Shown piece by piece: positions 8,066 to 61,770 of a DNA stretch of 64,000 nt. The notes beneath the pieces were generated by a model. The model did not search any database. It worked only from the letters and a program-made list of their open reading frames with translations, and was not told the DNA's origin. The DNA is taken from positions 88,598,001 to 88,662,000 of the forward strand of contig NC_043003.1 of assembly GCF_006345805.1 (NCBI RefSeq). The letters run 5' to 3'. Made by a program: the position numbers and the translations under genes. The stretch is from Octopus sinensis (lineage: Eukaryota). Positions within the stretch are counted from its first letter, which is position 1. Each line of letters begins with the position of its first letter.

Positions 8066-8672
8066 TATTGTTCTTATTTTACGTCCTTTGTTTGGAAGTA
8101 TTTTGTCTTGTAGACAAAGAACATAAAAGAAGAACAATAATTAACAAGTGAAGAACTAATGTGTAGTGCATGTTTATTTGGCAAGATGACAGTCCTGAAA
8201 TATAACAATATCTCAGCACACAAATTTTCATCAGGACTCTTAACTGTGTGTATTCCTATATATATATATATATGGTGGCTGCCCCCTCGTTATCGAGTGT
8301 GGCCATTGCATGAAGTTTAATCAATGTTGTTATTGTGCAATGTATGTGCAAGAAGATTTTTTTTTAAAGTGAGGAAAGGCTGTGCACTGAGTCAATCCCA
8401 CTCACTAAGCAACAGCAGCCATAATTCGAAAAGAAGAACAAGTCAACATCATCGGTAACCACTGAGCTGCAGGTTTTATGTCAGAGTTATCCCAGTTACC
8501 TGAGTTACCTTCTCCTAGCAGGATGCCCTAACAAAGGCTAGGAGTCCTTCACTCCCAATGGTTTAATCGTGCGATCGGGTATTCAGTCCGATTATTTCTA
8601 TCTTCCCACACATGATACAGCCTTAAGACATTTATTGGATGGCCGTTGACTCTCAAGAGTTCCTCCACCCTA

Positions 8673-10140: not shown

Positions 10141-13100
10141 CATCATCATCATCATCATCATCGTTTAACGTCCGCTTTCCATGCTAGCATGGGTTGGACG
10201 GTTCAACTGGGGTCTGGCAAGCCCGAAGGCTGCACCAGGCCAGTCAGATCTGGCAGTGTTTCTACAGCTGGATGCCCTTCCTAACGCCAACCACTCCGAG
10301 AGTGTAGTGGGTGATTTTATGTGCCACCGACATAGGTGCCAGACGAGGCTGGCAGACGGCCACGCTCGGATGGTGTTTTTTATGTGCCACCGACAGAGGT
10401 GCCAGACGGGGCTGGCGGACGGCCACGCTTGGATGGTGTTTGTTACGTGCCCTCAGCACGGAGGCCAGTCGTTGCGGTACTGGCTACGATCACGTTCGGA
10501 TGGTTTTCTTATGTGCCACCGGCACTGGTACCACAAGGATACAAATTCCATTGATGTTCATCTATTTTGATTTGGTTCGATTTGATTTGATTTGATTCGA
10601 TTCGATTCTCACTTGCCTCAACAGGTCTTCACAAGTGTCACAAGAAGGAAGGTATGCACAGGTGGACTGACTACGTCCCAGGTAGGGGCCACGGATTATG
10701 GCTTCACTAGTCTTGCCGGGTCTTCTCAAGCACAGCATACTTCCATAGGTCTCGGTCTCTAGTCATTTCCATGGTGAGACCTAACGTCCGAAGGTCGTGC
10801 TTCACCACTTCGTCCCAGGTTTTCCTGGGTCTACCTCTTCCACGGGTTCCCTCAACTGCTAGGGATTGGCACTTTCTCACACACCTATCTTCATCCATTC
10901 TCGCCACATGACCATACCAGCGCAATCGTCTCTCTTGCACACAACAACTGATGCTTCTTAGGTACAACATTTCTCTCAAGGTGCTAACGCTCTGTCGAGT
11001 AAGTACACTGACATTACACATCCATCGGAGCATACTGGCTTCGTTCCTCACGAGCTTACGCATGTCCTCAGCAGTCACGGCCCATGTTTCACTGCCATGT
11101 AGCATAGCTGTTCGTACACATGCATCATACAGTCTGCCTTTTACTCTGAGCGAGAGGCCTTTAGTCACCAGCAGAGGTAAGAGCTCCCTAAACTTTGCCC
11201 AGGCTATTCTTATTCTAGCAGTTACACTTTCAGCGCACCCGCCCCCACTACTGACTTGGTCACCTAGATAGCGGAAGCTATCAACTACTTCTAGTTTTTC
11301 CCCCCGGAAAGTGACGGAAGTTGTTTTCTGCAGATTTTCGGAGGTCAATGCTCCAGAGCATCTGCCACATACAAAAACTATCTTCCCAGTTAGCCTACCT
11401 TTGACATTGCTGCACCTCTTATGTGTCCATAGCTTACACTGGGTACATCTTATAGAGTTTCTACCTACACCTTTTCTACAGATCGAGCAGGGCCATCTTC
11501 CTGAGGATATTTGTGGATTTTCTAACTTTCTACTTATTAGTACTTTGGTTTTAGCTAGGTTGACTCTAAGGCCCCTCGATTCTAAACCCTCCTTCCACAC
11601 CTGGAACTTCTCCTCCAGTTCTGATAGTGACTCAGCGATTAGAGCGAGGTCGTCAGCATAGAGGAGCTCCCAGGGGCAGCCTGTCTTGAATTCCTCCACA
11701 ATTGCCTGGAGGACTATGATAAATAGGAGGGGGCTGAGTACTGAACCCTGGTGGACCCCAACCTCTACCTTGAATTCTTCTGTGTACATGCTGCCAACTC
11801 TAACCTTACTTACGGCATCTCTGTACATGGCTTGCACAGCCCTCACCAGCCATTCATCTATCCCTAGTTTCTTCATTGACCACCAGATGAGGGATCGGGG
11901 GACCCTATCAAAGGCTTTCTCCATGTCAACGAAAGCCAGGTACAGGGGCTTATCTTTGGCTAGGTATTTCTCCTGCAGCTGCCTTACCAGGAATATAGCA
12001 TCAGTGGTGCTTTTCCCTGGGACAAACCCAAACTGCATCTCATCTAAACTAACTCTCTCTCTAATTAGTTGGGCTATGACCCTCTCCGTAACCTTCATTA
12101 CCTGATCCAACAGCTTGATACCTCTGTAATTATTTGTATCCAGGGCATCGCCTTTACCTTTGTAGCAGTTGACTAGTATGCTGCTACACCAGTCATTGGG
12201 TATGACTCCTTCGTGTATCACCTGGTTGACTATACGGGTGACTAGGTTATAGCCGACACTGCCAGATATTTTGAGCATCTCTGCAGTAATTCCTGATGGG
12301 CCTGGGGCTTTCCCTGTCTTCATGCTTCTAATTGCCTTAGCTACCACGGAACTATCAACTCGGCTAGCTGGTCCCTCTGTTGGGTCAACATTCGGCAGAC
12401 TCTCTTTATCCCATTCATTTTCTTTATTCAGCAACCTTTCATAGTGGCATCTCCAAACCTCTCTCTTTGCATCCTCATTTAGCGCAAGTGAACCATCATC
12501 CATGCGAACACACTTCTCTCCTACCACATCACGATTCTCTCTCACACACTGTCTTGCAACACGGAATACCTCAAGTCTTTCATCCTCACGGCTCAGAACA
12601 TTGGCAAATTTTTTCTTATCCGCTTCCCCTCTGGCTAAATAAACCTGTCTCCTAGCTTCCCTTTTGGCTGTCTGATACAATTCCCTGCTACCACCGTTCT
12701 TCCAGTCCTTCCAAGCCTGTCTCTTTTGTCTAATAGCCCTGTCAACCACATTGTTCCACCACCATGTTACTCTGGGTCGAGATGGTACTTTGCTCCATCC
12801 ACAGATCTGGTCAGTGGCTGTCAGCAGATTGTCCCGTAGGAATCTCCAGTTGTCTTCCACATTAAGTGAAGCTATATCCCCTTCTATTTCGTCAGAGGCT
12901 TCGAGTAGTATGTCTCTAAATCTCTGTCCATTTGCAGGATCTTTAAGCTTCCAGACCCTTCTCCTCCAAGCCGGTCTTCTTCTGGGCAACCATTTAGCTC
13001 TGATCCTGAAGTTGCTAACTACTAATCTATGTTGGGGAGTACATTCTTCGCCTGGGAAGGTTTTGGCATTTATAATCAGCCCTCTTTCCCTTTTTCTGGC

Positions 13101-13503
13101 AAGGATGTAGTCAATCTGGCTGGTGTGTCTGCCAGAACGGTAGGTGACTAGTTGAGAGGTGGGTTTCCTGAAGTGGGTATTGCAGACCATAAGGTCATTT
13201 GCATCGCAGAACTCCAGCAGCCTGGTTCCTTCCTCATTTCGAGAGCCAAAACTGTAGCCTCCATGGACGCCATGGAAGCCCCCGACATGTCATCCAACAT
13301 GTCCATTGAAATCACCTGCCACGAAGAGAAGGTCACTGTCATTTGTCAATGAGGTAGTCCGCAATAGGGTGTCATAGAATTGGTCCTTTTGTCCTTCCGG
13401 TAGCCCTGGTTGAGGGGCATATGCCGAGATGATGGTAGCTGTCCTATGGTGAAGAACTAATCTAATTTTAATTACTCTGTCACTTACTCTGACTACCTTG
13501 CCT
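10141..13503 (-). mobile_element. Near-intact 5'-truncated RTE LINE (partial APE, RT, PHD finger, 3' UTR repeats, (GAT)n tail)
   Basis: ORF 10707-13190 has YRGIKLL, FVDMEKAFDRV, GVHQGSVLSPLLF, LYADD, FRYLG; the APE part upstream is in the same frame, separated by one TGA at 13290-13292; (CAT)n at 10141-10162 on +; possible TSD TATGTAT (10134-10140, 13503-13509). Confidence 0.95.
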
Positions 13504-18580: not shown

Positions 18581-19570
18581 ATGGCAGATCGCAGGTTTGT
18601 AGCGATGGACGATCGAGATTATTGCAAACTGTTCGTTGGACGTTTAAATCGAGATATCAATGAAAAACATCTGAAATCTTATTTTGAAAATTGGGGAGAA
18701 GTGGCCGAAGCTCGAATTGTTAGAGACTCATACGGTTTCGTAACTTTCCGATATCCACAACATCTGGACGACTGTCAAGGCGCGCGGCCTCACTCCATCG
18801 GCGAGCAACAAATAATCACGCGAAGGGTTAATTCTCGGGACAAAAACACAGCTGAAGTGTACAAGTTGTTTATCAAGGGCGTCAGCGAGGATACAACAGA
18901 GACAGACATCAAGCAATCATTTTCACCGTATGGTATTATTAAGGATATAGAAATGCCGAAGGATCTACGAACTGGACAACAGAAGGACTTCTGCTTCGTT
19001 ACTTTTGATGATTATGACAGCGTTGATAAGTGTGTGATCCAGCAAACATTCTCCGTGGCCGGCCGCGACGTATGGGTGCAGAAAGATAGAAAACAGGATT
19101 TACAGGGTCGCAGTGTAACATATCGAAAAGGTGGGTATGAAGACGGTTATTCAAACTCGTCTAATTACCGCCGTGACCAGGGTTGGCACAACGGTGGAAT
19201 TAGTAATGGTGGTAATAATAATAATTATAATGGTGGTGGTCACAACAGTTCGAATTACAGTGGTGACTCGGCTTGGAGAAATGGCAATAGTTACTCGCGT
19301 AGCAACTATCGACGCGAGAACAACTGGAACGGTCGGTCGAGTTACCATCAGAGGGATGACGGCTTCACTAATCGCCTCAACTTCAACCGTGACCCGAACT
19401 GGAGTAATAGTCACACCTCAAGTTATCACGACCAGCAAAGGTCGGGTGGTCACACCAACACCAATTACCACCGGGAACGAAGCTTGGGTCGTGTTAGCTC
19501 CAGTTATGGCAATAATAAAGACCAGACACGTTCTTCTAAGAGAAACTACGATAAACAGGGCCGCAACTGA
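18581..19570 (+). CDS. Intronless divergent hnRNP A1/A2/Hrb-family RNA-binding protein, 329 aa (2 RRMs and low-complexity tail), probable retrogene
   Basis: RRM1 KLFVGRL...YGFVTF...ARPHSI; RRM2 KLFIKGVSEDT...FCFVTFDDYDSVDKCVIQ aligns with hnRNP A1 KIFVGGIKEDT...FAFVTFDDHDSVDKIVIQ; single uninterrupted ORF. Confidence 0.9.
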   Translation: MADRRFVAMDDRDYCKLFVGRLNRDINEKHLKSYFENWGEVAEARIVRDSYGFVTFRYPQHLDDCQGARPHSIGEQQIITRRVNSRDKNTAEVYKLFIKGVSEDTTETDIKQSFSPYGIIKDIEMPKDLRTGQQKDFCFVTFDDYDSVDKCVIQQTFSVAGRDVWVQKDRKQDLQGRSVTYRKGGYEDGYSNSSNYRRDQGWHNGGISNGGNNNNYNGGGHNSSNYSGDSAWRNGNSYSRSNYRRENNWNGRSSYHQRDDGFTNRLNFNRDPNWSNSHTSSYHDQQRSGGHTNTNYHRERSLGRVSSSYGNNKDQTRSSKRNYDKQGRN

Positions 19571-41769: not shown

Positions 41770-41812
41770 GGCCATCTGATCACGTGACTTTACGGTGGCA
41801 AAATGGCGACTA
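41770..41812 (+). promoter_or_regulatory. PPIE promoter-proximal motifs (E-box TCACGTGA, YY1-like AAAATGGCG)
   Basis: GATCACGTGAC at 41779-41789; AAAATGGCG overlapping the start codon; locally CpG-rich. Confidence 0.5.
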
Positions 41813-41833
41813 ACAAACGTGTTGTGTATGTCG
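41803..41833 (+). CDS. PPIE: Peptidyl-prolyl isomerase E (cyclophilin E/Cyp33), coding exon 1
   Basis: ATG GCG ACT AAC AAA CGT GTT GTG TAT GTC G then GTGAGT donor = MATNKRVVYVG (human MATTKRVLYVG); phase 1 matches exon 2. Confidence 0.88.
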
Positions 41834-42934
41834 GTGAGTATTTATAATACAGATGGTAATTCAGTTTTTAACTTGTATTTAAAAAAAAAGTTATAGCTTT
41901 GATAATAGTTACTTATTTCACTTTGGTGACTTTTGTTGCAATCGCCCGAAAGAAGTTAGATTTTATTACTCTATCCGGTACCCCATATGACGCCGGGCAA
42001 AATGCATTTTGTTCGACTTCAAATTCAAATTCCGCCGAGGTCGACTTTGTCCTTCACCCTTGCAGTGTCGATAAAATAAGTACCAGCTGAGTACTTGAGA
42101 TCGATGAAATAGACTTCCTCCCTCCCTCGAAATTGTGCTAATGTTCGAAACTGAAGCATGCGCTATATATAGTTTGTCTTCCTCTGTAAAAAGGAGCCCA
42201 TTGCACCATATATATTTTCTCTTCTGTAAAATTGCTTATATGTTTACACACGAAAGCTATACGCGTAGTTGTCGTCAATTTCATATTTTAAGGTGTGCAT
42301 GTTCAGTTTTAAGTTTCAAATTTATTTACCCTCCCCCCCTAATCAGATTTTTACTGTTCGAGCAAACCTATAGTCAAAAACCTTTCCAGCTGTGACCATC
42401 TTATCCTGACTTTGCTCGAATTTTGAATTAATTGTTAATAGCGAAATGCTGTAGTGTAAATGGGAAGCTACCAGCAAATCAGATAAACTTAAGCATTTAC
42501 CTCTGTTATAACATTTTCTCTCACTACAACATCCTTTCAACCTCCCCCACCAAAAGAAAAAGTGTGTTGGGTGGACTTCTGTCGTACGTTGCTGTTCAAA
42601 TAGCGCGACTACCTTATTTCATTGCATTCCTCTTTTTTAAAGTCTTATGGAAGACATTTCACTACTATTCTCGCAGTTCGAGCGACTGGTTACTTGGTTG
42701 GGTTGATGATATCTTAACTAAACATATATTCCTTCACAAAAACTTGTACATCTTTTTCTGGAGACTAAAATTAAATTATGCCTCTTCGCTACTTCATTTG
42801 TAGTTTTTATTAACCCCGACCAACTCTAGACAATATCCATTGCCACAAATAATGGGATCCATATATATTGTAAAGGTTTTCAATGAAAAATGTTCCCTGC
42901 CCCCTCTTATATTTTATCAAATCTTATTTACGGC

Positions 42935-44150
42935 GGAGTTTCGGGTCAGGACGTCCACCTAAGTTGGATTTTCTCCTTTTCGACGAGGATTTTTCCAAAT
43001 TCTTTTCACTACGGCCTTCGAAACGTTGGTAGGGTGGGGGTGTTGATGCATCTTTTTATGAAATGAAATTTTTTGAAAATTTATGGTTTTTATCCACCCC
43101 GACTTTCTTTTTTGTGCTACACACTTAAAAACCGCGGGAAAAGCGGTACTATTTAAGAAGTGTGGTCCCGGTGCGCGCACTCGCGTTAGCTAGTCGTGAC
43201 TAGTCGATCCTATAACGACTACCTAGCAAAGTAAATAAAACACAAAATATATAATTGTTGTTTCTAGCATATCTCACAATCACCTTCTTCGTTTCTTTGT
43301 CACTCACACATATTGATTCTTTGCAATAATTTCTTTCCAATTTTCGTCTGTCTTTACATTCTGAGTTCAAATTCCGCCGAGGTCGACTGTCTTTCATCCT
43401 TTCGGGGTCGATAAATTAAGTACCAGTTGCGTACTGGTTCGATCCAATCGACTGTCCCCCTCGCTCACCAAAAATTTCGTTCCTTGTGCCTAGAGTAGAA
43501 AAGAATATTTTCTTCCCACAAGCGCATTTTATGGAATGAAGTAACAAATGCGTGGTACATTGCTGATATATAAGCACGTACAAATATATAATTTTTATTT
43601 TTAACCATCCCCCAAACCAAACGAGGCCATGTGTTAGAAAAATCATTTACTAACAGAGACGTATACTATCAAAATAAATTATTTTACATGCCTTTGTTAA
43701 ATCACTGGACAACTTTCTTAGTCTCTTCAATATTATAAACAATTTTTTGAAAAGATTACAAATTTTCAATTGTATTTTTAAAAGCATAAATGTGTTTATG
43801 GGGAGAAAAATATTGAAAAACATCAATACATGTGCAAGTGACAAAAGAGACGAGGAAGATGGTCATGGGATGTGCTAGAAACAACAGCTAAATTTCCCGT
43901 ATATCAATCACACCTTTTCGTTTGAAAATACGTTTTTTTTCCACTGAAAAGACTTTACGTAATGGTTTTCAAAACAGTTGGCCGAAATCAATCGAGGGAG
44001 GTGGGGAAAAAAATCATAAATTTCCCCAATTTTTTTTTCATAAAAGGATGGTCTTTATCATTTCGAAGACCGTGGTGAAAAGAAATTGGGAAAATCCCCG
44101 TCAAAATGGATAAAATCCAACTTATGTGAGTGTCGTGATCCGAAATCCAG
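42935..44150. repeat. Older inverted-repeat element (arms about 42935-43135 and 43955-44150) containing a SINE B piece (43345-43510)
   Basis: TTTCGGGTCAGGACGTCCACCTAAGTTGGATTTTCTCC...TTCTTTTCACTACGGCCTTCGAAA mirrored, with divergence, by TTTCGAAGACCGTGGTGAAAAGAA...AAAATCCAACTTATGTGAGTGTCGTGATCCGAAA. Confidence 0.75.
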
Positions 44151-44199
44151 CAATGTACACTACTTCCTATTACCTTTATTACAATACATATGATTGAAG

Positions 44200-46125
44200 G
44201 GTTAATATAGGGCGTAACAAATATCAGAAAATCAAAAAAAAAATGTGTGTAATAGGTGTAAAACAACTTCCTATGAACGAATATGAAAAAAAAAATTCGC
44301 GCACGCGAAAGGGGGGTGGGGGAGAGGCCTCGGAAAATTCACATCGGGAAGTTCCGAAAGCGTCTGAGGGGCTGACCCGGGCACCAAAACAAAAAAAAAA
44401 TAGTGTAATATGTGTAAAACAACTTGCTCTAAACGAATATGACAAAAAAAATGCGCTCTCGCGAAAGAGGGGTGGGGGAGAGGCCTCGGAATATTTATAT
44501 CGGGAATTTCCGAAAGCGTCTGAACCGGGCACAAAAACAAAAACAAAAACAGCGTAATAGGTGTAAAACAACTTGCTCTAAACGACTATCATGAAAAAAA
44601 TGCGCGCTCGCGAAAGGGGGGTGGGGGAGAGGCTTCGGAAATTTCACATCTTCAGTCCACGGCCTTTAAACTAAGAAAAAATAGTGTAATTGGTGTAAAA
44701 CTACTTGTTCTAAACGAGTATCAAGAACACACACTCACACATGAATCATAAACTCCGTATTTCGCAAAAAAAAAAAATAAAGAGAAGAAATTCTGGAAAA
44801 AGTGAAGAAATGTTGGATCTCCGCCATGTGAATCAAAATACGTGTCAGAAACATCTTGAAATACTACAGAAATTATGTTACGAAAATGATAATGTATACA
44901 TACCTCTTTGAGTGGTCCATCGACAATGATGATAAAGAAATGAGTTGGATTTGAACTCAGAATATTGACTAACACAACTACATACTACAAGACTCAAAAT
45001 ATTCAGCCAAGTCACCACCCTTTAACTAGCAATAATAATAACATCAATAACATAACAGCCAAAAGATTTATTTGTTCTGAAAATAACAATCATAGTAAAT
45101 AAATATGTTCTTTAATATTCACATTCATGTGCACAGTTAAACACACTTACATACAAACAGTCACGCATGCATAATACAGAACGGAACACATAAATGAAGG
45201 ATGCATTACTTAGTATATATTACATCTAGAGAATTTTGATTAATAAGTCAAATATGCAAATTATAAAGATAATTAATTGCTTTACTAAACAGTGTTGTAA
45301 AGGTGAAAAAATAAATTTGGGAAAAAAATACACGCCAAAACTAATTAATAAAGGATAATTAGGGAAGGATTGACACAAAATAATAATTTTTTCTGTCTCT
45401 TTTTTCTGATAAATGCATCTTAATAAGTGAAAAGAATTGCATATATCTGAACTATTTCAAAGAAAAGCATAAATTTAATGTTTAAAATAGCTTTAACCAA
45501 GGAATGAGATCCAACATTTCTTCACTTTTTCCAGAATTTCTTCTCTTTATTTTTTTTTTTTGCGAAATACGGAGTTTATGATTCATGTGTGAGTGTGTGT
45601 TCTTGATACTCGTTTAGAACAAGTAGTTTTACACCAATTACACTATTTTTTCTTAGTTTAAAGGCCGTGGACTGAAGATGTGAAATTCCGAAGCCTCTCC
45701 CCCACCCCCCTTTCGCGAGCGCGCATTTTTTTCATGATAGTCGTTTAGAGCAAGTTGTTTTACACCTATTACGCTGTTTTTGTTTTTGTTTTTGTGCCCG
45801 GTTCAGACGCTTTCGGAAATTCCCGATATAAATATTCCGAGGCCTCTCCCCCACCCCTCTTTCGCGAGAGCGCATTTTTTTGTCATATTCGTTTAGAGCA
45901 AGTTGTTTTACACATATTACACTATTTTTTTTTTGTTTTGGTGCCCGGGTCAGCTCCTCAGACGCTTTCGGAACTTCCCGATGTGAATTTTCCGAGGCCT
46001 CTCCCCCACCCCCCTTTCGCGTGCGCGAATTTTTTTTTTCATATTCGTTCATAGGAAGTTGTTTTACACCTATTACACACATTTTTTTTTTGATTTTCTG
46101 ATATTTGTTACGCCCTATATTAACC
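44200..46125. mobile_element. Young non-autonomous foldback DNA transposon; TIRs 44200-44821 and 45506-46125, 8-bp TSD GATTGAAG
   Basis: Near-perfect arms of about 620 bp built from about 155-bp tandem subunits; 684-bp AT-rich spacer; GATTGAAG at 44192-44199 and 46126-46133. Confidence 0.92.
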
Positions 46126-46133
46126 GATTGAAG

Positions 46134-46552
46134 TACACCATTTCACCGGTCGTAACTTTTTTTTTAGTTTTGATATTTTCAGAAAATTTCTCACAATGAC
46201 AAAAAAGTTTTTTCCTAAATCTTCTTAAGTTTATCCTAAATTTCCCCATTTTGTTTACCTGAATGATGTCCTATTTTTGTTTGTTCCTAATGAAATATTG
46301 CTTCTTTTTTATATTGTTCCAAATAATTATTTTGTTTATCTGAAAATAATACCTTATGTATCTTCCAAATGATTTTTATTTATAGTTTGTCCCGAATTAC
46401 CCCCCAAAATTTGAGAATTTCAGACAGGCGATAAAAAAATTTCAATTAAATATTTTTTTTCTCGTTTAACTGTACAAGATGGACTTTGTAGAACTCAAAT
46501 TTGAAAAAAAATCTGAAAATATCAAACGTTACGACTGGTAAAATGGAGTCTT
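46134..46552. repeat. Short diverged inverted-repeat (MITE-like) element
   Basis: CCATTTCACCGGTCGTAAC...TTTGATATTTTCAGA mirrored by TCTGAAAATATCAAACGTTACGACTGGTAAAATGG. Confidence 0.6.
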
Positions 46553-46616
46553 TTGATCAGAACTCTACACATCGGTGTCTGATTCTTCAAATATCTGCAT
46601 AATTTTTAAAAACGTG

Positions 46617-46980
46617 CAGGCATGGCTGCATGTGTAGGCATGGTTCAGTCCCACTGTGTGGTACCTTGAGCAAGTGACTTCTACTATAACCTTGGGCTAA
46701 CTAAAGCTTTGTGAGTGGATTTCTTAGACGGAGACTGAAAGAAACTTGTCATATATATGTATATCTATGTTTGTCCTCCACCACCATTTGACAACTGATG
46801 TTGGTGTGTTTACGCCTCTATAACTTAGCAGTTTGGCAAAGAAACCAATAGAACAAGTACTGAGCTTTACAAAAATTAATATGTACTAGGGTTGATATAA
46901 GTTTGAGTAAATTTCTTTTAGGCAGTGCCTCAGCATGGCTGCAATCTAATGAATGAATCAAAAGATAAAAGATTAAAAAG
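46617..46980 (+). mobile_element. SINE family A, degraded full length
   Basis: GGTTCAGTCCCACTGTGTGG...GACAACTGATGTTGGTGTGTTTACG...CAGCATGGCTGCA. Confidence 0.8.
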
Positions 46981-47649
46981 GTTTGCAAAAGACGCCAAGG
47001 CTGAAATATTACAGAAAGGGGTGAGGTAGGGGTAAACATCTTCCTGCTAAGTTTAGTAATCTTTAATATCTTATATCTCTCAATAATAATTGTTTCTAAT
47101 GAATATAAGTGTGTTTATGTTTGTTATTTATTTTCAGACTTATATGATATTTAATATTACAAATTCTGCCCTGAAACATGCTGAGTATATATGTTGCTTG
47201 CTTTGATATGTGCATATAACAACACATCATCATCATCAATATTTGATGTCTGTTTTCCACCATCATCAATATTTAATGTCTGTTTTCCATGGTTTGGATG
47301 GCTTGACAGGAACTGACAAGTACAGGGGCCACACCAGGCTCCATAGTCTGTTTTGGTTTGGTTTATACAGCTGGATGCCCTTCCTAATGCCAACCACTCC
47401 ACAGAATGTATTGGGTGACACCAGCACCCACACCAAAAAATGTGATGGAAAGAATGCCAAATAGACATTTATTAGGATGAATTCTTACACCAAATTGTGA
47501 TAATTGAGTAAAAAGTTATTCCAAATTAAGAAAATGTTGCTTGTCTGTACAGCTAAATCATCAGTGTAGGCAAAAACAAATTGCAAACCACAAATGAACT
47601 CATCAATAAACCTTTGAAAAGTATTAGCTGCATTACAAAATCTGAATTC

Positions 47650-48030
47650 ATCATCATCATTTAATACCCTCCTTCCATGTTGGCATGGGTTGGATGGTTT
47701 GACAGGAGTTGCCCATGCAGGAGCCTGCACCATGTTTCTGGTTTGTTGGGGTAGAGTGTGTGAAAATTTTTTTTGTTATGTGTCAGGTTCACTGACATGG
47801 GCAAGTCTTCTCTAGAACCTCATATCACTAGACATCCCTTCCATTGTCATTTTCTTTGTGAACTCCAACATCCTGAAATTGCTCCTCACCACTTCAGCCC
47901 ATGTCTTCCTGAGTCTCCATCTTTCACAGGTACCACCCACTTTCGTTGACCAACATCTCTTTATACAGGTGTCTTCATTCATATGCATCACATGTCCAAA
48001 CCAACATAGTTTCCTCTCTTGCATGCTGCA
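47650..48030 (-). mobile_element. RTE 3' fragment nested in Gypsy RT
   Basis: (CAT)n tail; MQERKLCWFGHVMHMNED...GRLRKTWAEVV. Confidence 0.8.
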
Positions 48031-48849
48031 TTTGATTCCTCTGAAGGGTATTTTAATAAATTCAAAATGTCTAAAATGGGTAGTTATAGCTGTCTTAGGA
48101 ATGTCAGGTAGCGCAATCAGAATTTAGTTGTAAGGAAATGCTAAATCAATATTCAAAAAGACAGTACAGTCATGTCTAAAATATGTGGAATAGGATACTT
48201 ATCTGGAACTGTTAAGGCATTTAACTGCCTGTAGTCTCTACAAGGATGCCAATTGCCCCAGACTTTTTTTTGACTAAATGTAGCAGTGAGAAACAGTTAC
48301 TACCAGAAGGTCGGATTATTCCAACATAAGACCAAATTCTCCCTTTACAATTTTAAGCTTGTTTATGGTAAGATGTCTGGGATGAGACGAGAACAGGAGG
48401 TCCCTTTGTAATAAAATGATGAGCAACAGAATGTACTGGACTCTTGTTATTAAAAACAGTAGGAGTGATACTTGGAAATTTCTGAAGACTCATGATAATG
48501 GTTATATGCAAATGGAACAAAGAAAAGCAGACTCACATAAAGATTTGAATACATACTCTGTGCTGATAGCTTGGTTTGCATATCTATCAGTTGCCTGTGC
48601 TTCAAACTGACAAGACCAAAATGATGCAAGAAGTAAAAAGTTGGCATCAAGAATAGGATACAGAAGGTTGGCAGTGATGAATATCCATTTGAACTGTTGC
48701 CTTTAGCTCCAGTGCTAAAAATTTTTTGCCGAAAGTAGTGATTGGTGAATGATTTATGGCTTGCATTGCTATGGCAGGTGGTTTTAATGAATCAGAAGTT
48801 TGACAGGCCATATACTACTGGCTGCTCCAGTGTCAACTAATATTGCCTG

Positions 48850-49084
48850 AAAGGCGGCGAGCTGGCAGAAACGGTAGCACGCCGGGCAAAATGCGAAGCC
48901 GTATTTCGTCTGCCGTTACGTTCTGAGTTCAAATTCCGCTGAGGTCGACTTTGCCTTTCATCCTTTCGGGGTCGATAAATTAAGTACTAGTTATGCACTG
49001 GGGTCGATGGAATTGACTTAATCCGTTTTGTCTGTCCTTGTTTGTCCCCTCTGTGTTTAGCCCCTTGTGGGTAGTAAAGAAATA
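48850..49084 (+). mobile_element. SINE family B with 11-bp TSD, inserted beside the Gypsy protease DTG motif
   Basis: AATATTGCCTG at 48839-48849 and 49085-49095; A box TGGCAGAAACGG, B box GTTCAAATTCC. Confidence 0.92.
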
Positions 49085-49544
49085 AATATTGCCTGGAGAT
49101 GGTGTCATAAGTGAAGATGATACAACAGGCTGATAATCCATCCAGAGATTTAGTTGTGTTTAATCTCTGGCAACAATGTTTTACTGGTCTTGAGTAGATG
49201 ACTTAAAAGTGCAAGGAGAGATATGCTTGTGCACATTCATTCCGAAATGACTGTAATACTAACAGAAAGATAAAGAATTTTTTGAGCGCTATAAAATCAC
49301 TTTCTCAAAATTCTCTGGCCATAAGAATTCAAGTACTGATGGAATCTTGGAAGCTCAAACTGCTCGAGCTTGTCCATTAGAACTTGTATTGTCTCATCAG
49401 TTGACTTGCAGAACAAGGCCAGTCCAGAGGGTATTGAAGACACAAAAGGATAAGTTTTGGTACTGTTTGTATTTGGAGAAGAAATATCCATAATACTGTG
49501 TGCTAGCTCCACTAGCTAGTTAATAGAACCCTGCTCTCTTATCA

Positions 49545-50090
49545 TCATCATTTAATATCCGTTCTCCATGCTGGCATGAGTTGGATGGTTTGACAGGAGT
49601 TGGCCAGCTGCAGAGCTGCCCATGCTCCATTTGTCTGTTTTGGCTTGGTTTCTATAGCCAGATATCCTTCTTAATGCTAACCACCTACCATCCACATAGC
49701 CCACCAGATAAGGGAGCAAGAGACCCTGTCAAAGATTTTCCCCGTGTTAACAAAAGCTAAATACAGTGGTTTTTGGCCAAATACTTCTCCTGCAGCTGTC
49801 TTGCCAGGAAGATAGCATCGGTAGTGCTTCTTCTTGGCACAAAACCAAACTGTATCTCATCTAGATTAACTCTCTTCCTAATTAATTGAGCTATGGCTAT
49901 TGCTGTAACTTTCATCACTTGGTCCAGCAATTTGATACTTCTTTAATTATTTCTATCTAAGGTATCACTTTTACCTTTGTAGTTGTTGACTATAATGCTG
50001 CTTCACCAGTTGTTGGATATGACTCCCTCATGGACAACCTGATTATCTATATGGGTGACTAGGCCATATTCCACGCTGTCAGAATAGCTT
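49545..50090 (-). mobile_element. Internally deleted RTE fragment nested in Gypsy gag
   Basis: (CAT)n tail and 3' UTR joined directly to the RT segment FDRVSCSLIWW. Confidence 0.8.
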
Positions 50091-52679
50091 GTGCATTATG
50101 TGGAAGGTGGGGAAAAAAAAAGCTGCCGTAACATAGATTCATTAAGTTGGTTTGTCTTCTACCAAATCCCACATTTTTCTCAATAGTTGAGAAGGTTGTT
50201 TGCTGCTTAGGGTTCCCTTATGGAGGAGTTAATGGAATCTCTTTTGCTTGAACATAGAAGTACATCTCATAATTTCTGCCTTCATACTTTTATATGAGCG
50301 GTGATCAAGTCTTTAACTTTGCTGCTCAAAGCTGGTGGCAAAACACTGACTTGTATATGGAACTGCCATGCATCAGAGGATATCTTGTTAGCTGCAAATT
50401 TGGCTTCATGTTGCAAAAACCAAATCGATGGGTCCCCTGGGTAAGGTAGTGATGCAATCAGTAATGCTGCCTGCTTTGTTAGACTGTTGCTAGTTTCTGG
50501 GGAAATTGAAAGAACAGGAGAAGACGCTATAACAGTGTTGTTAAGAAATTAAAAATTATAGAAAGACAAAAATACTGGCTATTTTTGAGCTGGTAAAACT
50601 TATTATACTGCTGCCATGTAGATTTAACTGCTATTTTGAGGAAAAATGAAAGTGTGACTTGTAGCCAATAGTGGTTACTTGATATGGTGGTGGAAAGTGG
50701 CTGTAAGGAAAAGATGCCGTTGGCTTCTTGCACCCTTGTTTTACCTTTCTCAGTCTTTAGGGTTTTAAATGACTTAAGTTACGCTTTCCTGAATGAAAAA
50801 AAGCATTCAAAATGAGTTGTCAAGAAGGTCAACAGGACTTTATGTATATATTGTTGCAGGCATGTAGAAGTAATTCATGATTCAAGTCAATAAGTAGCCA
50901 TGATAACTAAGCGTTAGCTTTGTCATAGGTCACCAATGTTGTTTGGAGGGTATACATGTGAGGCTGTGTGTGGATGATGTATCAACACCATGCAAACATT
51001 TAATAGTAAATTTTATTTTGCTTCACAAGTAATATTTTCAGATTGGTCATGAATTATAAAGTTTCCACAGCAAGTCAACACTGTTGAAAGAATAATTGTG
51101 CAGCATTCATCATCTGTACTGAAGTTTGCCAGGATAGGAGAGAATATACAGTATATTGATATTGGTCAACTATTATAACATATCCAGGTTGAGCAGAAAG
51201 TCATGAAAAAACTATTATAAATGACAAGAGAGTGTTTGGAGCTGGACTTCAGGTTACCATTCACTGAAAGTTGATGCTAAAAACAAGCCTTGTACTGAAA
51301 TGTTCCAGAACGAGCTAGAAGAACCTATTACGTGAAGTCTGGCTGCTGATTGGTTAATAACTTGACCTCTCACAGGAACAATTTTGTGCTATGTCATAAC
51401 TTAAACATTGCAATCTGTCGACTTGGTTTTGAGTTTGTTACACATACAATGTGTTTATGATTACATTTAATAAACATATTTTGTGTAGCTGTGAATTTAG
51501 GACCATATTCTGATGCATTGGTGCTCTATGAATGAGAAAAACAATACCCCCCAACTATGACATATAATGTGTCATCCTTTTTACTATTTAGTTGTTGTTT
51601 TTTTTTAGATGAAGCTGTTAAAGGAAAAGGAAGACTTGGTTGTTGTTTCTAGTAGGTTGAGAGACCAGGTAGCAGTTTCAACTTCATTGTGTTTGCTGAG
51701 CTTCATAACAAGGATTTTGATTGGCTAAAATTATTTAACTTTAAATGCTTGTAACTTCTTTATTATTACTTTCTGTAAAAAAATTAATTCAGTTTTTGTC
51801 ATCAGTATGCAAAACTACACCAGAACGAAATTTTTTGAAAATTATCTGATGGAAATTTGAAAAACTTTAAGTGGTTGGAAGTGTCACAACGGCATGGTGT
51901 TAATGAAAGATGTTGTGAAATGCTGGTGGTGGTTGAGTATAATGATGCATAACAATTAACAGAACTTTATTGACCACTCAAAATAGTTTCCATGTTGGTC
52001 TTGAATTTAAAATACAACAAAATTAACACACTGGTAGAATAATTCTGCAGTTATTACAAAATAGTTGGTGAAATAAACTGTCATGACAGGAGAAAATGCC
52101 ACGTGGGGTTCATGACTGCAGAACTGTAACTGCTGTCTAATGCAGCAAAGTGAGAATGTGGTTTGCATGATGGTGATTGTCTACAAACTGAAATTGGGCA
52201 CCCAAAGCATGCCTATTTATAAAACCCATTAGGAAATGTTATAGAAAATTCAAGAAAATTGCACCAGGTGACGTCTTGATGCTGATTAGCCAGTTAATCA
52301 GCTGATCACAAGAAATAGCTGTCACTAAGCTATGGCTTTTACTTGGCAATTTGATAATTCAGTTTCAAATCTGCTTTAGAAGAAATTTAACATGGTCTAT
52401 TTCTAATACAGATGCAGGCCAGAAATTTGGGAGAGGGTTGTTGATTATATTGACCCCAGTACTAAACTGAAAATAAATTTTATTGACCTCCAAAAGGGTG
52501 AAAGGCAAAGTTGACCTCAGCAGGATTTCAACTCAAAATATAAATAGCCAAAAGAAGTTCCACAAGGCATTTTATTGAACAATTTTACCAATCCATCACC
52601 TTCAACTTACATAGGTAACACAAGTCCACAGATATTTGTTATGCTGAATCCAAAAATGGATCCAATTTTTACCATTGTG

Positions 52680-52985
52680 TCTAGATTTGAAGATATCCAA
52701 ACCCCACCAAATCATCTGTAGGTAATGTGTGTGGACTTCAAGATGGTCAATTATTTCTTGGGGCAACAATGTGGATACATGAAATATCCATGCTTTTTAT
52801 GTATGTAGGACAGCAGTGTCAAGGGAAATCATCGAGTGATCAAAGAATGGCTTCAGTAAACTTTAGTTTCAGGGTCTTTTAATGTGCCTTTAATTCAGCC
52901 AGGAAAAATCCTACTTCCTCTCCATATCAAACTTGGCATTATAAAGCAGTTTCTAAAGCTCTGTATAAAGATGGACCATGCTACT
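52680..52985 (+). mobile_element. DNA transposase remnant, Chapaev3-like (family assignment inferred)
   Basis: VDFKMVNYFLGQQCGYMKYPCFLCM*DS...ILLPLHIKLGIIKQF. Confidence 0.7.
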
Positions 52986-52994
52986 CAGTGTTAC

Positions 52995-53900
52995 TGGAAA
53001 CTTCAATATCAGTGAAAATATAGACAAGCTATACATTCCTTGTAAGGATGGTGGCTATAGTCTTAAACCTGTAATGATGTCATATCAAGCACATATTGTG
53101 ACACTGAAGCAATATCTATAGCAGAGAAAAGAGGCCAGTAAGTATCTTGCCCAAGTTTGCAAGCATGAACTCAACAGTATAATTAGGATAGCTAATGAAT
53201 TCAAGGAGAAGTATGAAATAAGAACTGATATAGATCTCTTTCCAAGGAGCATTAGTAACTTCTCTTTATCAGAACAACACAATAAAACAATGGATCAGTT
53301 TACTGGTAGTGCATGGATACTTGACATGAAAAATACAAGCCATTGAGGGAATTAATCATAATTTAAGTTTATAATTATCTCACTTTGAACTCTACTTTCA
53401 CGTAATTTATGAACAAGAAATCTAGTACCTGCAACATAAAAAGCAGAAAAAATTGACAAACATCAAATGCAGGCTGTGCAGAACTAAGGCTGAAGACATC
53501 AACCAGATTATTGCCAGCCACAACAGAATGTCTTTTAATATTATCTTCCCATGAGGCATGATGCAGTGGCCAAAACAGTCTAAGAGAAAAGGAAAATAAC
53601 AATAGATGAAGTTGACTATACTAAGACCAACGGGTCAAAAGAATATTAGTGGAACTTAAAAATTAAAACAGCCAACAAGTTAAAACTCAACTGGTCAGAT
53701 AATGTGTAGAGCTACAAGAAAAAATATACTCTTGTGGAAATTATCTGCCTTCTGGATGCTAATGCGGTTAGAAAATCCAGGGAAAAGAGGATATTCATGG
53801 ACTATTGATAAGGAATTTGTATATCCAGTACCCAAAATACACTTTTAACTTCATACTTATCATTATTGAACCACAGGATATGTACTAACCTGCCTGGAGC
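52995..53900 (+). mobile_element. Degraded R4/Dong-like non-LTR retrotransposon C-terminus
   Basis: KLYIPCKDGGYSL (cf. LYLPRKEGGRGL), CRLCRTKAEDINQII (degenerate CCHC), restriction-like endonuclease remnants. Confidence 0.5.
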
Positions 53901-54470
53901 TAAGTGGCTGGACTTGGGTACTTGGAGAGAGAATGCACTCCATAATTTAAATACTACAAATGTTCATGATATCTAGGACGGTAAAATCTGGAAGTGATCA
54001 AAATTTGAAGTGAATAAAACAAGATGCTTTCTGTCACAACTTTGCTGCCAAGCAGGTGGTTGATCAAAATTAGATCTAAATAAAAAAGAGAAAAAGAACA
54101 CATATTTACACACACACACACACACACTCTCTCTCTCTCTCTCTCTCTCCCAAACCATGAGCTTCTGCACAATTTTTCTTTACCTAATTCCACTCTCATG
54201 ATATTGATCACTCCAAGGTTGCAGAAGACACTTCACCAAGAAGGTGCATAATGCGATTGTACTTAGAACCATGTAGTTGTGAAGCAAAGTCTTAACTTCA
54301 TGGCTATGCTTTGAGAGAAGAAATAAAGACAATATGGTCACAGTTAGAATACCTTTATTCATAGGACCTTTCAGTGAAGGCTGACATAGGTTGAGCAGCA
54401 TCATTAAGTCACGTACTTAGCCTCTACTCTGATGTTTGATTTCTTAAAAAAATATTTATTTCTATTGTAG

Positions 54471-54569
54471 GTGGTTTGGCTGAGGAAGTAGACGAAAAAG
54501 TGTTACAAGCTGCATTCATTCCATTTGGTGATATTGTTTACATTCAGATCCCTCTTGATTATGAAACTG
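54471..54569 (+). CDS. PPIE: PPIE coding exon 2 (RRM)
   Basis: TATTGTAG acceptor and GTAAG donor; 99 nt = (G)[32 protein letters not shown](E); human [34 protein letters not shown]. Confidence 0.95.
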
Positions 54570-54774
54570 GTAAGAAACTCATGACTTTTTTTTTGCAAAC
54601 ACAATATTGCGACACATTCAAACATGGTTTTTGATTCAGTTCCACTGTGTGGCACCTTGGGTAAGTGTCTTTTGCTATAGCCTCAGGCTAATCCAACCTT
54701 TGCATATAGATTTAGTGGACAGAAACTGTCTTTCGCTATAGCCACAGGCTAATCCAACCATTGCATATAGATTT

Positions 54775-57700
54775 ATCATCATCATCATCATCGTTTAACG
54801 TCCGCTTTCCATGCTAGCATGGGTTGGACGGTTCAACTGGGGTCTGGCAAGCCCGAAGGCTGCACCAGGCCAGTCAGATCTGGCAGTGTTTCTACAGCTG
54901 GATGTCCTTCCTAACGCCAACCACTCTGTGAGCGTAGTGGGTGCTTTTTACATGCCACCGACACAGGTGCCAGACGAGGCTGGCGAACGGCCACGCTCGG
55001 ATGGTGTTTTTTACGTGCCACCAGCACGGAGGCCAGTTGATGTGGTACTGGCTACGGCCACGTTCGGATGGTTTTCTTATGTGCCACCGGCACTGGTACC
55101 AAAAAACTACAAATTTCATTGATGTTCATCGATTTTGATTTGATTCTTTGATTTTTGATTTTCACTTGCCTCAACAGGTCTTCACAAGTAGAGTTATGTG
55201 TCCCAAGAAGGAAGGCATGCACAGGTGGACTGACTACATCCCAGGTAGGGGCTATGGGTTATGGCCTCACTTGTCCTGCCGGGTCTTCTCGTGCACAGCA
55301 TACTTCCAAAGGTCTCGGTCTCTGGTCATTTCCTCGGTGAGACCTAAAGAGCGAAGGTCGTTCTTCACCACCTCGTCCCAGGTTTTCCTGGGCCTACCTC
55401 TTCCACAGGTTCCCTCAACCGCTAGGGTGTGGCACTTTTTCAGACAACTATCTTCATCCATTCTTACTACGTGTCCATACCAGCGTAGACGCCTCTCTTG
55501 CATACCACATCTGATGCTTCTTAGGTTCAACTTTTCTCTTAAGGCACTTACACTCTGTTGGGTTTGAACACTGACATTACACATCCATCGGAGCAAACTG
55601 GCTTCATTTCTTGCGAGCTTACGCATATCCTCAGCAGTCACGGCTCATGTTTCACTGCCATGTAGCATGGCTGTTCGCACACATGCGTCATACAGTCTGC
55701 CTTTTACTCTGAGTGAGAGGCCTTTTGTCCCTAGCAGAGGTAAGAGCTCTCTGAACTTTGCCCAGGCTATTCTTACTCTAGCAGTTACACTTTCGGCACA
55801 CCCATCCCCGCTACTGACTTGGTCACCTAGGTAACGGAAACTATCAACTATTTCAAGTTTTTCTCCCTGGAATGTGGCGGAAGATGGTCTCAGAGCATTT
55901 TCAGTGTTTATTGTTCCTGAGCATCTGCCACATACAAAAACTATATTCCTAGTTAGCCTTCCTTTGACATTGCTGCACCTCTTATGTGTCCATAGCTTAC
56001 ACTTGGTGCATCTTATAGAGTTCCTACCTACGTCTTTTCTACAGATCGAGCAGGGCCATCTACCTGAAGGCGTTTGAGATTTGTCTACCTTCCTACTTAT
56101 TAGGACTTTGGTTTTCGCTAGATTGACTCTAAGGCTCTTCGATTCTAATCCTTGCTTCCACGCCTGAAACTTGTCCTTGAGTTCTGATAGTGATTCAGCA
56201 ATTAGAGCAAGGACATCAGCATAGAGGAGCTCCCAGAGGCATCCTGTCTTGAATTCTTCCGTTATTTCCTGGAGGACTATGATAAATAGGAGGGGGCTGA
56301 GGACTGAGCCTTGGTGGACCCCAACCTCCACCCGGAATTCTTTAGTGTACTCGTTGCCAACCCTCACCTTACTAACAGCGTCCCTGTACATGGCATGCAC
56401 AGCTCTCACTAAGCATTCATCTATCCCTAGTTTCTTCATTGACCACCAGATAAGGGAACGGGGGACCCTGTCAAAGGCTTTCTCCAACTCAACGAAAGCC
56501 AGGTACAGAGTTTTATCTTTGGCTAGGTATTTCTCCTGCAGCTGTCTCACCAGAAATATGGCATCAGTGGTGCTTTTCCCTGGCACGAAACCAAACTGCA
56601 TCTCGTCTAGGTTGACTCTCTCTCTAATCAGTTGGGCTATGACCCTTTCCGTAACCTTCATTACCTGATCCAACAGCTTGATACCTCTGTAATTATTTGT
56701 ATCTAGGGCGTCACCTTTACCTGTGTAGCAGTTGACTATTATGCTACTACACCAGTCATTGGGTATGACTCCTTCGTGTATCACCTGGTTAACTATACGG
56801 GTGACTAGGCTATAGTCGACACTGCCAGATATTTTGAGCATCTCTGTAGTAATTCCTAATGGGCCTGGGACTTTCCCTGTCTTCATGCTTCCAATTGCCT
56901 TAACTACCATGGAACTGTCAACTCGGATAGCTGGTCCCTCTGTTGAGTCGACATTCGGCAGACTCTTTTTATCCCATTCATTCTCTTTGTTGAGCAATCT
57001 TTCATAGTGGCATCTCCAAACCTCTCTCTTTGCATCCTCATTTAGCACAAGTGAACCATCATCCATGCGAACACATTTCTCTCCTACCACATCACGATTC
57101 TCTCTCACACACTGTCTTGCAACACGAAACACCTCAAGTCTTTGGTCCTCACGGCGCAGAACATTGGCAAATTTTTTCTTATCTGCTTCCCCTCTAGCTA
57201 AATATACCTGTCTCCTAGCTTCTCTTTCCGCAGTCTGATACAATTCCCTACTACCGCCTTTCCTCCAGTCCTTCCAAGCCTGTCTCTTGTCTCTAATAGC
57301 CCTGTCTACAACATTATTCCGCCACCACGTTACCCTGGGATGAGATGGGACTTTGCTCCATCCACAGATCTGGTCAGTGGCTCTCAGCAGATTGTCCTGT
57401 AGAAACCTCCAGTTGGCTTCCACATTATGTGATGTTATATCGCCTTCTATTTCGTCGAAAGCTTCGAGTAGAACTTCTCTAAATCTCCGTCCATTTACAG
57501 GATCTTTAAGTTTCCAGACTCTTCTCCTCTGAGCTGGTCTTCTGGGCAGCCATTTGGCCCTGATCCTGAAGTCGCTAACTACTAATCTATGTTGAGGAGT
57601 ACATTCCTCGCCTGGGAAGGTTTTGGCATTTATAAGCAGCCCTCTTTCTGGCGAGGATGTAGTCGATCAGGCTAGTGTGTCTGCCAGAACGGTAGGTGAC

Positions 57701-60477: not shown

Positions 60478-61770
60478 CGAGGGGCATTCAATAAGTAATG
60501 CCCCTGACCCACTTGCCGTTGTTTGATCTAGCTGAAATTTTGCGTGTGCAATTATTTATATCTCTATAGAGTAGGTGGCAAATTACAGCTCTGAACTAAT
60601 TGGGGTTTCTGATTTACAGGTGTTTGAACTGAGTCAAGTGTGAAATGGAGCCTGTTGAGTGTCGAGCAGTGATCTGGTTTTTGTATTTGAAAGGACGCAC
60701 ACCACGGGAGACTTTTGATGAAATGAAAGTAACTTATGGTAATGATGCCCCATCATATGACCTTGTAAAACGCTGGCATCGTGAATTCAAACATGGTCGG
60801 AACTCGGTGGAAACAGCTCCTAGATCTGGTCGCCCCCCCCTTCTGCAATTGATGAGGCATCTGTCTGTCAAGTTGAGGCTGCCATTTTGGAAGATCGACG
60901 CATAACTATTCGCCAAATAGCCCATGAGGTCAAGATTAGTACCGGGTCTGTGGAAACTATCATTCATGACCATTTGCATATGCAAAAGGTGTCTGCCAGA
61001 TGGATTCCCAGGTTGCTCACACCTTTCCAGAAGCAAGAACGCTTCGAGTGCTCGAGGATAAATTTGGAGATGTACCAAGAAGATGAGTCAAAATTTTGCA
61101 AAAGACTGATTACACAGGATGAAACCTGGGTCCATCACTATGATCCAGAGACCAAAGCCCAGTCAATGCAGTGGAAGCACCGTGACTCACCTCCTCCAAA
61201 GAAGGCAAGGGTGCAGCCCTCCGCTGGCAAGGTCATGCTCGCAGTCTTCTGGGACCAGGACGGAGTATTGATAACAGATTTCCTGGCAAAGGGTACCACA
61301 ATTACAGGAGCCTATTATGCTTCACTTTTGAAGAAATTAAGAGAAACTATCAAAATCAAGAGGCGGGGCAAGATCAGCAAAGGCATCCTCCTCCTGCAGG
61401 ACAACGCTCCGGTCCACAACTCGCTTGTCGCTAGATCAGAAGCACAGGCATGCGGCTATGAACTCCTCCCTCATCCCCCTACTCTCCTGACCTTGCACCC
61501 TCTGATTTTCACCTCTTCCCAACCATGAAGTTGTTTTTGAAAGGAAAGCGTTTCCCAGATGATGCAGCCTTGATTTCTGAAGTCACGTCGTGGTTGGAGG
61601 ACCAAGCTGGGTCTTCTAAAAAAACGGTCTCCAGAGCTGTATCAAATATTGGGAGAAATACGTAACTCTGGGTGGTTCCTATGTAAAGAAAGACTAATAA
61701 CTGTGCAAAGTTTCGTTGCTCTACTGCTATGGGAAGTGGGTCAGGGGCATTACTTATTGAACGCCCCTCG
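60478..61770 (+). mobile_element. Full-length mariner (DD34D) transposon, 1293 bp, TA TSD, frameshifted transposase
   Basis: TA|CGAGGGGCATTCAATAAGTAATGCCCCTGACCCACTT ... AAGTGGGTCAGGGGCATTACTTATTGAACGCCCCTCG|TA; ITQDETW, LQDNAP, HPPYSPDLAPSD (34-residue spacing); frameshifts near 60833-60840, 61480 and 61620. Confidence 0.97.

Follow-up and report, generated by a model that had tools for sequence, protein, structure and literature searches.

What is the ~1.9-kb structure of two near-identical inverted arms of ~620 bp that lies within the first intron of PPIE, the cyclophilin-E gene, of Octopus sinensis: a mobile element, a local accident of replication, a hairpin kept for its function, or a fault of the assembly? 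To answer this question, we analysed a 64,000-nt stretch of the O. sinensis genome (NC_043003.1, positions 88,598,001 to 88,662,000, forward strand), which is called the window hereafter and in whose coordinates all positions are given. The structure is very probably a non-autonomous foldback-type class II transposon, of the kind that has terminal inverted repeats (TIRs) and moves by cut-and-paste, represented here by one insertion in PPIE intron 1. The element measures 1,926 bp between two copies of a target-site duplication (TSD) and, with these duplications included, is located at about CM016865.1:88,642,192-88,644,133 in assembly coordinates. Its outer features are the following.

44192–44199, no strand: left TSD copy, GATTGAAG, an exact match to 46126–46133 that adjoins the end of the inverted repeat
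44200–44821, plus strand: left terminal inverted repeat, 622 nt, of which 620 positions align with the reverse-complemented right arm
45506–46125, minus strand: right TIR, 620 nt, mirroring the left arm, its domains in identical order
46126–46133, no strand: right TSD copy, GATTGAAG, an exact match to 44192–44199

Global alignment of the two arms (622 versus 620 nt) revealed an identity of 99.5%, with only three differences. One is a substitution, G at 44370 versus A, which appears on the plus strand as T at 45955. The other two are one-base indels, a run of eight A at 44444–44451 versus seven T at 45875–45881, and a run of three A at 44639–44641 versus two T at 45686–45687. An independent repeat search returned these arms as well, split into three inverted blocks in collinear order. 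The inverted repeat ends exactly at the duplication without extending into GATTGAAG, and the bases outside GATTGAAG differ, leaving no direct repeat beyond 8 bp. As both the direct and the inverted repeat stop sharply, the duplication is exactly 8 bp. Both ends of the element read 5'-GGTTAATATAGGG, and the 19-nt terminus GGTTAATATAGGGCGTAAC is found only at these two ends in the window, compared to 0.02 occurrences expected by chance. Inverted repeats that stop sharply between two exact copies of flanking DNA are what a transposase leaves when it integrates an element through staggered cuts. An earlier interpretation made without database searches (the sequence-only reading) had already placed the arms, one G/A substitution, differences in homopolymer length and an exact 8-bp TSD, and the alignment bears it out almost to the base.

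The arms, which together account for 64% of the element (622 + 620 of 1,926 nt), have a modular organization, given here for the left arm along with the middle of the element.

44200–44228, plus strand: outer (terminal) domain, 29 nt, GGTTAATATAGGGCGTAACAAATATCAGA, without counterpart in units 2–4 by alignment
44229–44721, plus strand: tandem sub-repeat domain, defined by Tandem Repeats Finder (TRF), repeat families, unit alignment and motif counts
44722–44821, plus strand: inner domain, ~100 nt, unrepeated in the arm, within the inverted repeat and pairing with 45506–45605
44822–45505, no strand: middle (loop) domain, 684 bp, 28% G+C, non-palindromic, with no coding signal

The 29-bp outer domain is presumed to be the end recognized by a transposase. 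The sub-repeat units start at about 44229, 44386 and 44535 with lengths of 156, 149 and 132 bp, respectively, and are followed by a partial fourth unit (44667–44721) that resembles units 1–3 for its first ~55 nt only. TRF reported a period of 156/155 with ~2.8 copies in each arm at 85% matches, and the repeat search found a 54-nt unit core in four copies per arm, at a spacing of 156/149/132. In addition, the G-rich motif GCGAAAGGGGGGTGGGGGAGAGGCCTCGGAA occurs six times in the window, three times per arm, with none expected by chance. It is present in units 1–3, with one substitution each in units 2 and 3, and absent from the partial fourth unit. The modular arms of ~155-bp units had been recognized in the sequence-only reading together with a G-rich motif, which, however, was spelled there one G short. 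Every full unit also harbours two small palindromes, TTCGCG-CA-CGCGAA and TCGGAA-N16-TTCCGA, which along with the invariant unit core GTGTAAAAC are candidate protein-binding sites. The standard four-run pattern detected no G-quadruplex motif in the G-rich core.

The sub-repeats inside one arm are only 74–88% alike, in contrast to the 99.5% identity between the arms. This contrast indicates that the arms are alike because an array whose units had diverged beforehand was duplicated once in inverted orientation, and not because of a recent tandem expansion.

None of this sequence appears to encode a protein. The open reading frames (ORFs) of the middle domain are no longer than 84 aa, and neither these nor the ORFs running through the arms have a Pfam match at E<=1, as expected from the earlier claim that no transposase lies inside. 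The two longest left-arm ORFs, concatenated, have no homologue at E<=0.001 among 5.8 billion proteins; moreover, a left-arm ORF and flanking ORFs that were looked up have no exact protein match on record. The region has no Rfam match at E<=1 and contains no tRNA, and on these grounds neither a structured RNA nor a tRNA-derived short interspersed nuclear element was accepted as the source of the unit. The middle domain has no similarity elsewhere in the window. The element thus displays the structural marks of a foldback: long TIRs that make up most of its length, modular arms, a non-coding middle and a flanking TSD.

As the element encodes nothing, it would have to be mobilised in trans. No ORF for a transposase of the MULE/FB type or of the DDE_Tnp_IS1595 family was found in the window. 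We propose that a DDE transposase, whose gene would reside at another genomic locus, binds the outer domains of 29 bp and probably, in addition, motifs that recur among the ~150-bp sub-repeats. The enzyme would then excise the 1,926-bp element and integrate it with staggered cuts 8 bp apart, whose repair would give rise to the GATTGAAG duplication.

The element was placed within PPIE by tblastn and by inspection of the splice sites, as follows.

41803–41833, plus strand: coding sequence of PPIE exon 1, with the ATG at 41803, MATNKRVVYVG, by tblastn
41834–54470, plus strand: PPIE intron 1, 12,637 nt, GT..AG (GTGAGT...TAG), by tblastn of PPIE with the splice sites read directly
54471–54570, plus strand: PPIE exon 2, by tblastn and splice boundaries

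The element is 2.36 kb away from the 5' splice site of intron 1 and 8.3 kb from the 3' splice site. In Argonauta hians, PPIE is split identically between exons 1 and 2 by an intron 1 some 8 kb long, and the 44-kb locus of this gene contains nothing similar to the element. The two exons, with their split matched in A. hians, confirm the location in PPIE intron 1 that had been suggested from the letters. In searches with the 45-aa N-terminal segment of PPIE, only targets of 79 aa or less were retrieved, whereas the same query padded with X to 305 aa retrieved full-length PPIEs. No Octopus PPIE entry was present among the 120 matches listed, nor in the Argonauta/Acanthosepion protein clusters.

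How long ago did the element arrive? The arms differ by one substitution in 620 nt, corresponding to a divergence of 0.16%. For comparison, positions 8581–29570 of the window, which are base-for-base the O. sinensis locus, were compared with the O. vulgaris locus and gave 74 substitutions in ~20.8 kb (0.36%), in addition to numerous small indels. The flanked O. vulgaris locus used for this comparison ends 14.6 kb short of the element. Since both comparisons collect change along two lineages, the time recorded by arm identity is, as a point estimate, about half of the species divergence. Moreover, the observed/expected ratio of CpG is 1.29 in the left arm, to which the right arm is 99.5% identical, compared to 0.53 in the middle domain and 0.45 in the whole window. 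The undepleted CpG of the arms fits either too little time for decay or an unmethylated state. Altogether, near-identical arms that have kept their CpGs suggest that the inverted structure, and hence the insertion, is probably recent, with an age on the order of the split between O. sinensis and O. vulgaris or later. The recent origin put forward in the sequence-only reading is supported by the same two observations.

The anatomy and composition of the arms also bear on whether they were ever mobile. A local inverted duplication that never moved, produced for instance by replication template switching or hairpin-primed synthesis, would account for the single documented copy, and microhomology at a rearrangement junction can leave short direct repeats. 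However, template switching copies adjacent DNA and leaves one junction, and would not put the same 8 bp outside both ends. Neither arm resembles the surrounding intron. In addition, the outer, tandem and inner layout matches that of known foldback transposons, and the CpG ratio of 1.29 in the arms versus 0.45 in the window marks them as foreign to the local sequence. We consider such a duplication a highly improbable origin of the structure, compared to the insertion of a foldback transposon.

What would the inserted transposon do to the transcript that carries it? Folding of the 1,926-nt sense transcript by ViennaRNA gave a predicted energy of -1254.9 kcal/mol, compared to -420 +/- 10 for ten shuffles. 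In the predicted fold, 620 of the 622 left-arm bases pair with the right arm, and the lone arm substitution is accommodated as a G-U wobble on the sense strand. The long double-stranded RNA (dsRNA) that had been claimed for the pre-mRNA is therefore backed, at the level of prediction, by a duplex of ~620 bp. Upon transcription of PPIE, the intronic copy would fold into this near-perfect duplex, of a type on which ADAR, and possibly Dicer, is active. The A-to-I editing of metazoans mainly targets dsRNA from young repeats, with octopus among the sampled species (PMC9989829), which makes hyper-editing of the PPIE intronic hairpin a reasonable expectation by analogy. By contrast, the mature mRNA is expected to be little affected. 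Both arms reside in one intron, more than 2.3 kb from the splice sites, and their pairing would loop out 1.9 kb but leave all splice signals free, so that the effect on PPIE mRNA should be small or nil and an effect on splicing is unlikely on the anatomy.

The stability of this hairpin raises the question of whether it has been domesticated, either to supply endogenous small interfering RNA (siRNA) or to act within the intron as an “editing inducer” by which ADAR is brought to the PPIE pre-mRNA. A very stable sense-strand duplex of ~620 bp is predicted, in which the sole substitution is a tolerated G-U wobble. Octopuses edit their RNA heavily (PMC9989829), and in mammals, long intronic hairpins can induce editing at distant sites (PMC3479170). 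Nevertheless, a recent insertion explains the structure fully, as near-identical arms are the default in a young element and need no selection. Moreover, the PPIE locus of Argonauta contains no similar sequence, and the nearest exon is 2.4 kb away. It is therefore most doubtful that the hairpin is maintained for a role in PPIE, and a young foldback insertion is the preferred explanation.

An assembly artefact is barely credible, whether a spurious inverted duplication arose by a mis-join or from a chimeric palindromic long read (e.g., where a SMRTbell adapter was overlooked). In its favour, the assembly was presumably built from noisy long reads, and homopolymer length, a typical consensus error, accounts for two of the three differences between the arms. 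However, fold-back palindromes duplicate the local sequence around a point of symmetry, whereas the centre here is 684 bp long and non-palindromic, and the arms, unrelated to either flank, end sharply within an exact 8-bp direct repeat on both sides, as integration would leave them.

Further copies of the element, or an empty site, were sought in several collections. No other copy was found in the rest of the 64-kb window, in ~21 kb of the O. vulgaris assembly or in the 44-kb Argonauta PPIE locus. The flanks have no similarity to the arms, and the two flanks joined in silico, as a paralogous empty site would read, matched no repeat spanning the junction in the window or in these loci. A DNA pattern scan of metagenome, viral and prokaryote-genome collections for the terminus, the unit core and the G-rich motif gave zero matches, and BLAST against plasmids and phages gave none; an origin from a vector or contaminant was rejected on the basis of these null scans. 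A literature search found no paper on foldback elements in octopus, and a search with the terminal and core sequences found a 13-mer in one unrelated paper only.

Several points weigh against a young, mobile foldback element. A single copy was seen, and the repetition and mobility that define a transposon are presumed from the anatomy of one insertion; likewise, no autonomous partner was found. The age is also loose. With one substitution, the Poisson range extends from roughly 0.01 to 2.5 times the species divergence, which is wide enough to accommodate both presence and absence of the insertion in O. vulgaris. In addition, gene conversion between the arms could keep an old element looking young, and the two arm differences in homopolymer length may be consensus errors of a long-read assembly. 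As for the consequences, transcription through the element, ADAR editing, siRNA production and any effect on the splicing of PPIE are putative and deduced from the structure.

The element sits in surroundings rich in transposable elements (TEs), with reverse-transcriptase ORFs of long interspersed nuclear elements (LINEs) and a mariner remnant. Two LINE-type ORFs, at 10707–13190 and 55267–57423, both on the minus strand, form a closely related pair with an RVT_1 domain and a PHD-like finger. One of them is intact with 827 aa, and the other is split into 592 + 124 aa and lies just past PPIE exon 2, in intron 2. An ORF beginning MLAWVGRFNWGLASPKAAPGQSDLAVFLQLD is shared upstream of both, at 10181 and 54811. 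The pair suggests a recently active retrotransposon family. The mariner-type transposase remnant (60887–61528, plus strand; PF01359, E=1e-24) is the sole DNA-transposase sequence in the window, and is unrelated to the foldback element, as mariner makes TA duplications.

Just upstream of the insertion site, an 85-bp segment occurs as two inverted copies 1.1 kb apart (42939–43023 on the minus strand and 44061–44145 on the plus strand) with an identity of 84%. The ORFs through both copies give similar peptides (..VVKRxWxNPRxxG..). The pair does not span the insertion point and probably represents a small repeat of greater age close to the target site.

Within the segment compared between the two octopus species, an intronless ORF of 329 aa (18581–19570, plus strand) has two RRM domains and a long Gly/Asn/Ser/Tyr-rich tail, which give its product a resemblance to hnRNP-like RNA-binding proteins. 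The protein is identical in O. sinensis (GCA_006345805.1, CM016865.1) and O. vulgaris (GCA_951406725.2, OX597820.1), and its gene is the only one on record in the surrounding 21 kb.

The locus provides a clean case, with well-defined limits, of a foldback transposon from the cephalopods, a group of very high TE content (57% reported for O. sinensis; PMC10294476). As a mobile element it is of an ordinary kind, and it gives no sign of a new mechanism. Young long inverted repeats are hotspots of ectopic recombination and inversions, as exemplified by Galileo, DAIBAM and Tetris in Drosophila (PMC4079207). If the family is active and the site differs between O. sinensis and O. vulgaris, the near-perfect 620-bp intronic dsRNA in this housekeeping gene would offer a convenient natural test of how ADAR or Dicer acts on new repeats. 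A more far-reaching scenario joins four propositions: an active and uncatalogued octopus foldback family, its mobilisation by one of the 8-bp-duplicating superfamilies Merlin, Novosib or Zisupton, a PPIE site that is absent or polymorphic in O. vulgaris, and a hairpin that is hyper-edited or diced in vivo. We regard the four together as unlikely; if true, they would supply a natural presence/absence allele for gauging how a new perfect dsRNA affects its host gene in a species whose ADAR is exceptionally active.

To which known systems is the element most similar? It shares an 8-bp TSD with the non-autonomous elements of the hAT superfamily. Yuan and Wessler in 2011 reportedly described hAT termini as YARNG and hAT inverted repeats as short, of 10–25 bp. 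The length of the duplication therefore fits hAT, but the termini (GGTTA) and the 622-nt arms do not, which makes hAT a poor fit. The P superfamily has duplications of 7–8 bp and CANRG termini, and its foldback member Galileo has 7-bp duplications and CA... termini. The GGTTA termini of the element make it a poor fit to both, and its 8-bp duplication differs from that of Galileo.

The 8-bp duplication and the 5'-GG termini favour Merlin or Mutator/Foldback over hAT or P. Merlin, related to IS1016/IS1595, has a TSD of 8 or 9 bp and a conserved terminal 5'-GG-3' (PMC8101967). The element matches both, which are nevertheless two weak characters read from one copy. The inverted repeats described for Merlin range from 24 to 462 bp, which is a range and not a strict rule, whereas the arms here are modular and reach 622/620 nt. 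Merlin, Novosib and Zisupton are almost restricted to cephalopods among molluscs according to automated repeat libraries, while MULE and hAT are ubiquitous in molluscs and hAT is abundant in cephalopods (PMC10294476). Mutator elements typically have a TSD of 9–10 bp (range about 8–11), so that the 8 bp seen here, in a single copy, is at the low edge. Tetris, with a TSD of 8–10 bp, was itself put in Mutator on TSD length alone (PMC4079207). Judged from one copy, Merlin and Mutator/Foldback fit best and are about equally open. The “FB/Mutator-type” label of the sequence-only reading is thus supported as regards the foldback anatomy but not established as regards Mutator, as the 8-bp TSD and 5'-GG termini suit Merlin equally.

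The element also resembles known systems in overall architecture. Canonical foldbacks such as FB and Tetris are built of an outer domain, tandem units and an inner domain around a middle (PMC4079207), which is the arrangement seen here. Like FB of Drosophila melanogaster, Tetris of D. virilis and TU of sea urchin, the element is non-autonomous, dominated by long modular arms and centred on a short non-coding middle. Its 8-bp TSD is in line with the 8–10 bp of foldback systems and the 8–9 bp of complete Tetris copies (PMC4079207). Compared to Tetris, the sub-repeat units are shorter (~150 versus 220 bp), and the likeness to these systems is one of layout, with no similarity of sequence expected. 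Most foldbacks have been placed in Mutator and Galileo in the P superfamily, and the architecture is thought to arise repeatedly (PMC4079207). Galileo and other long-arm derivatives show that this architecture can be gained independently, as elements lose their transposase and their arms grow longer (PMC4079207, citing Marzo et al. 2008; PMC4168063).

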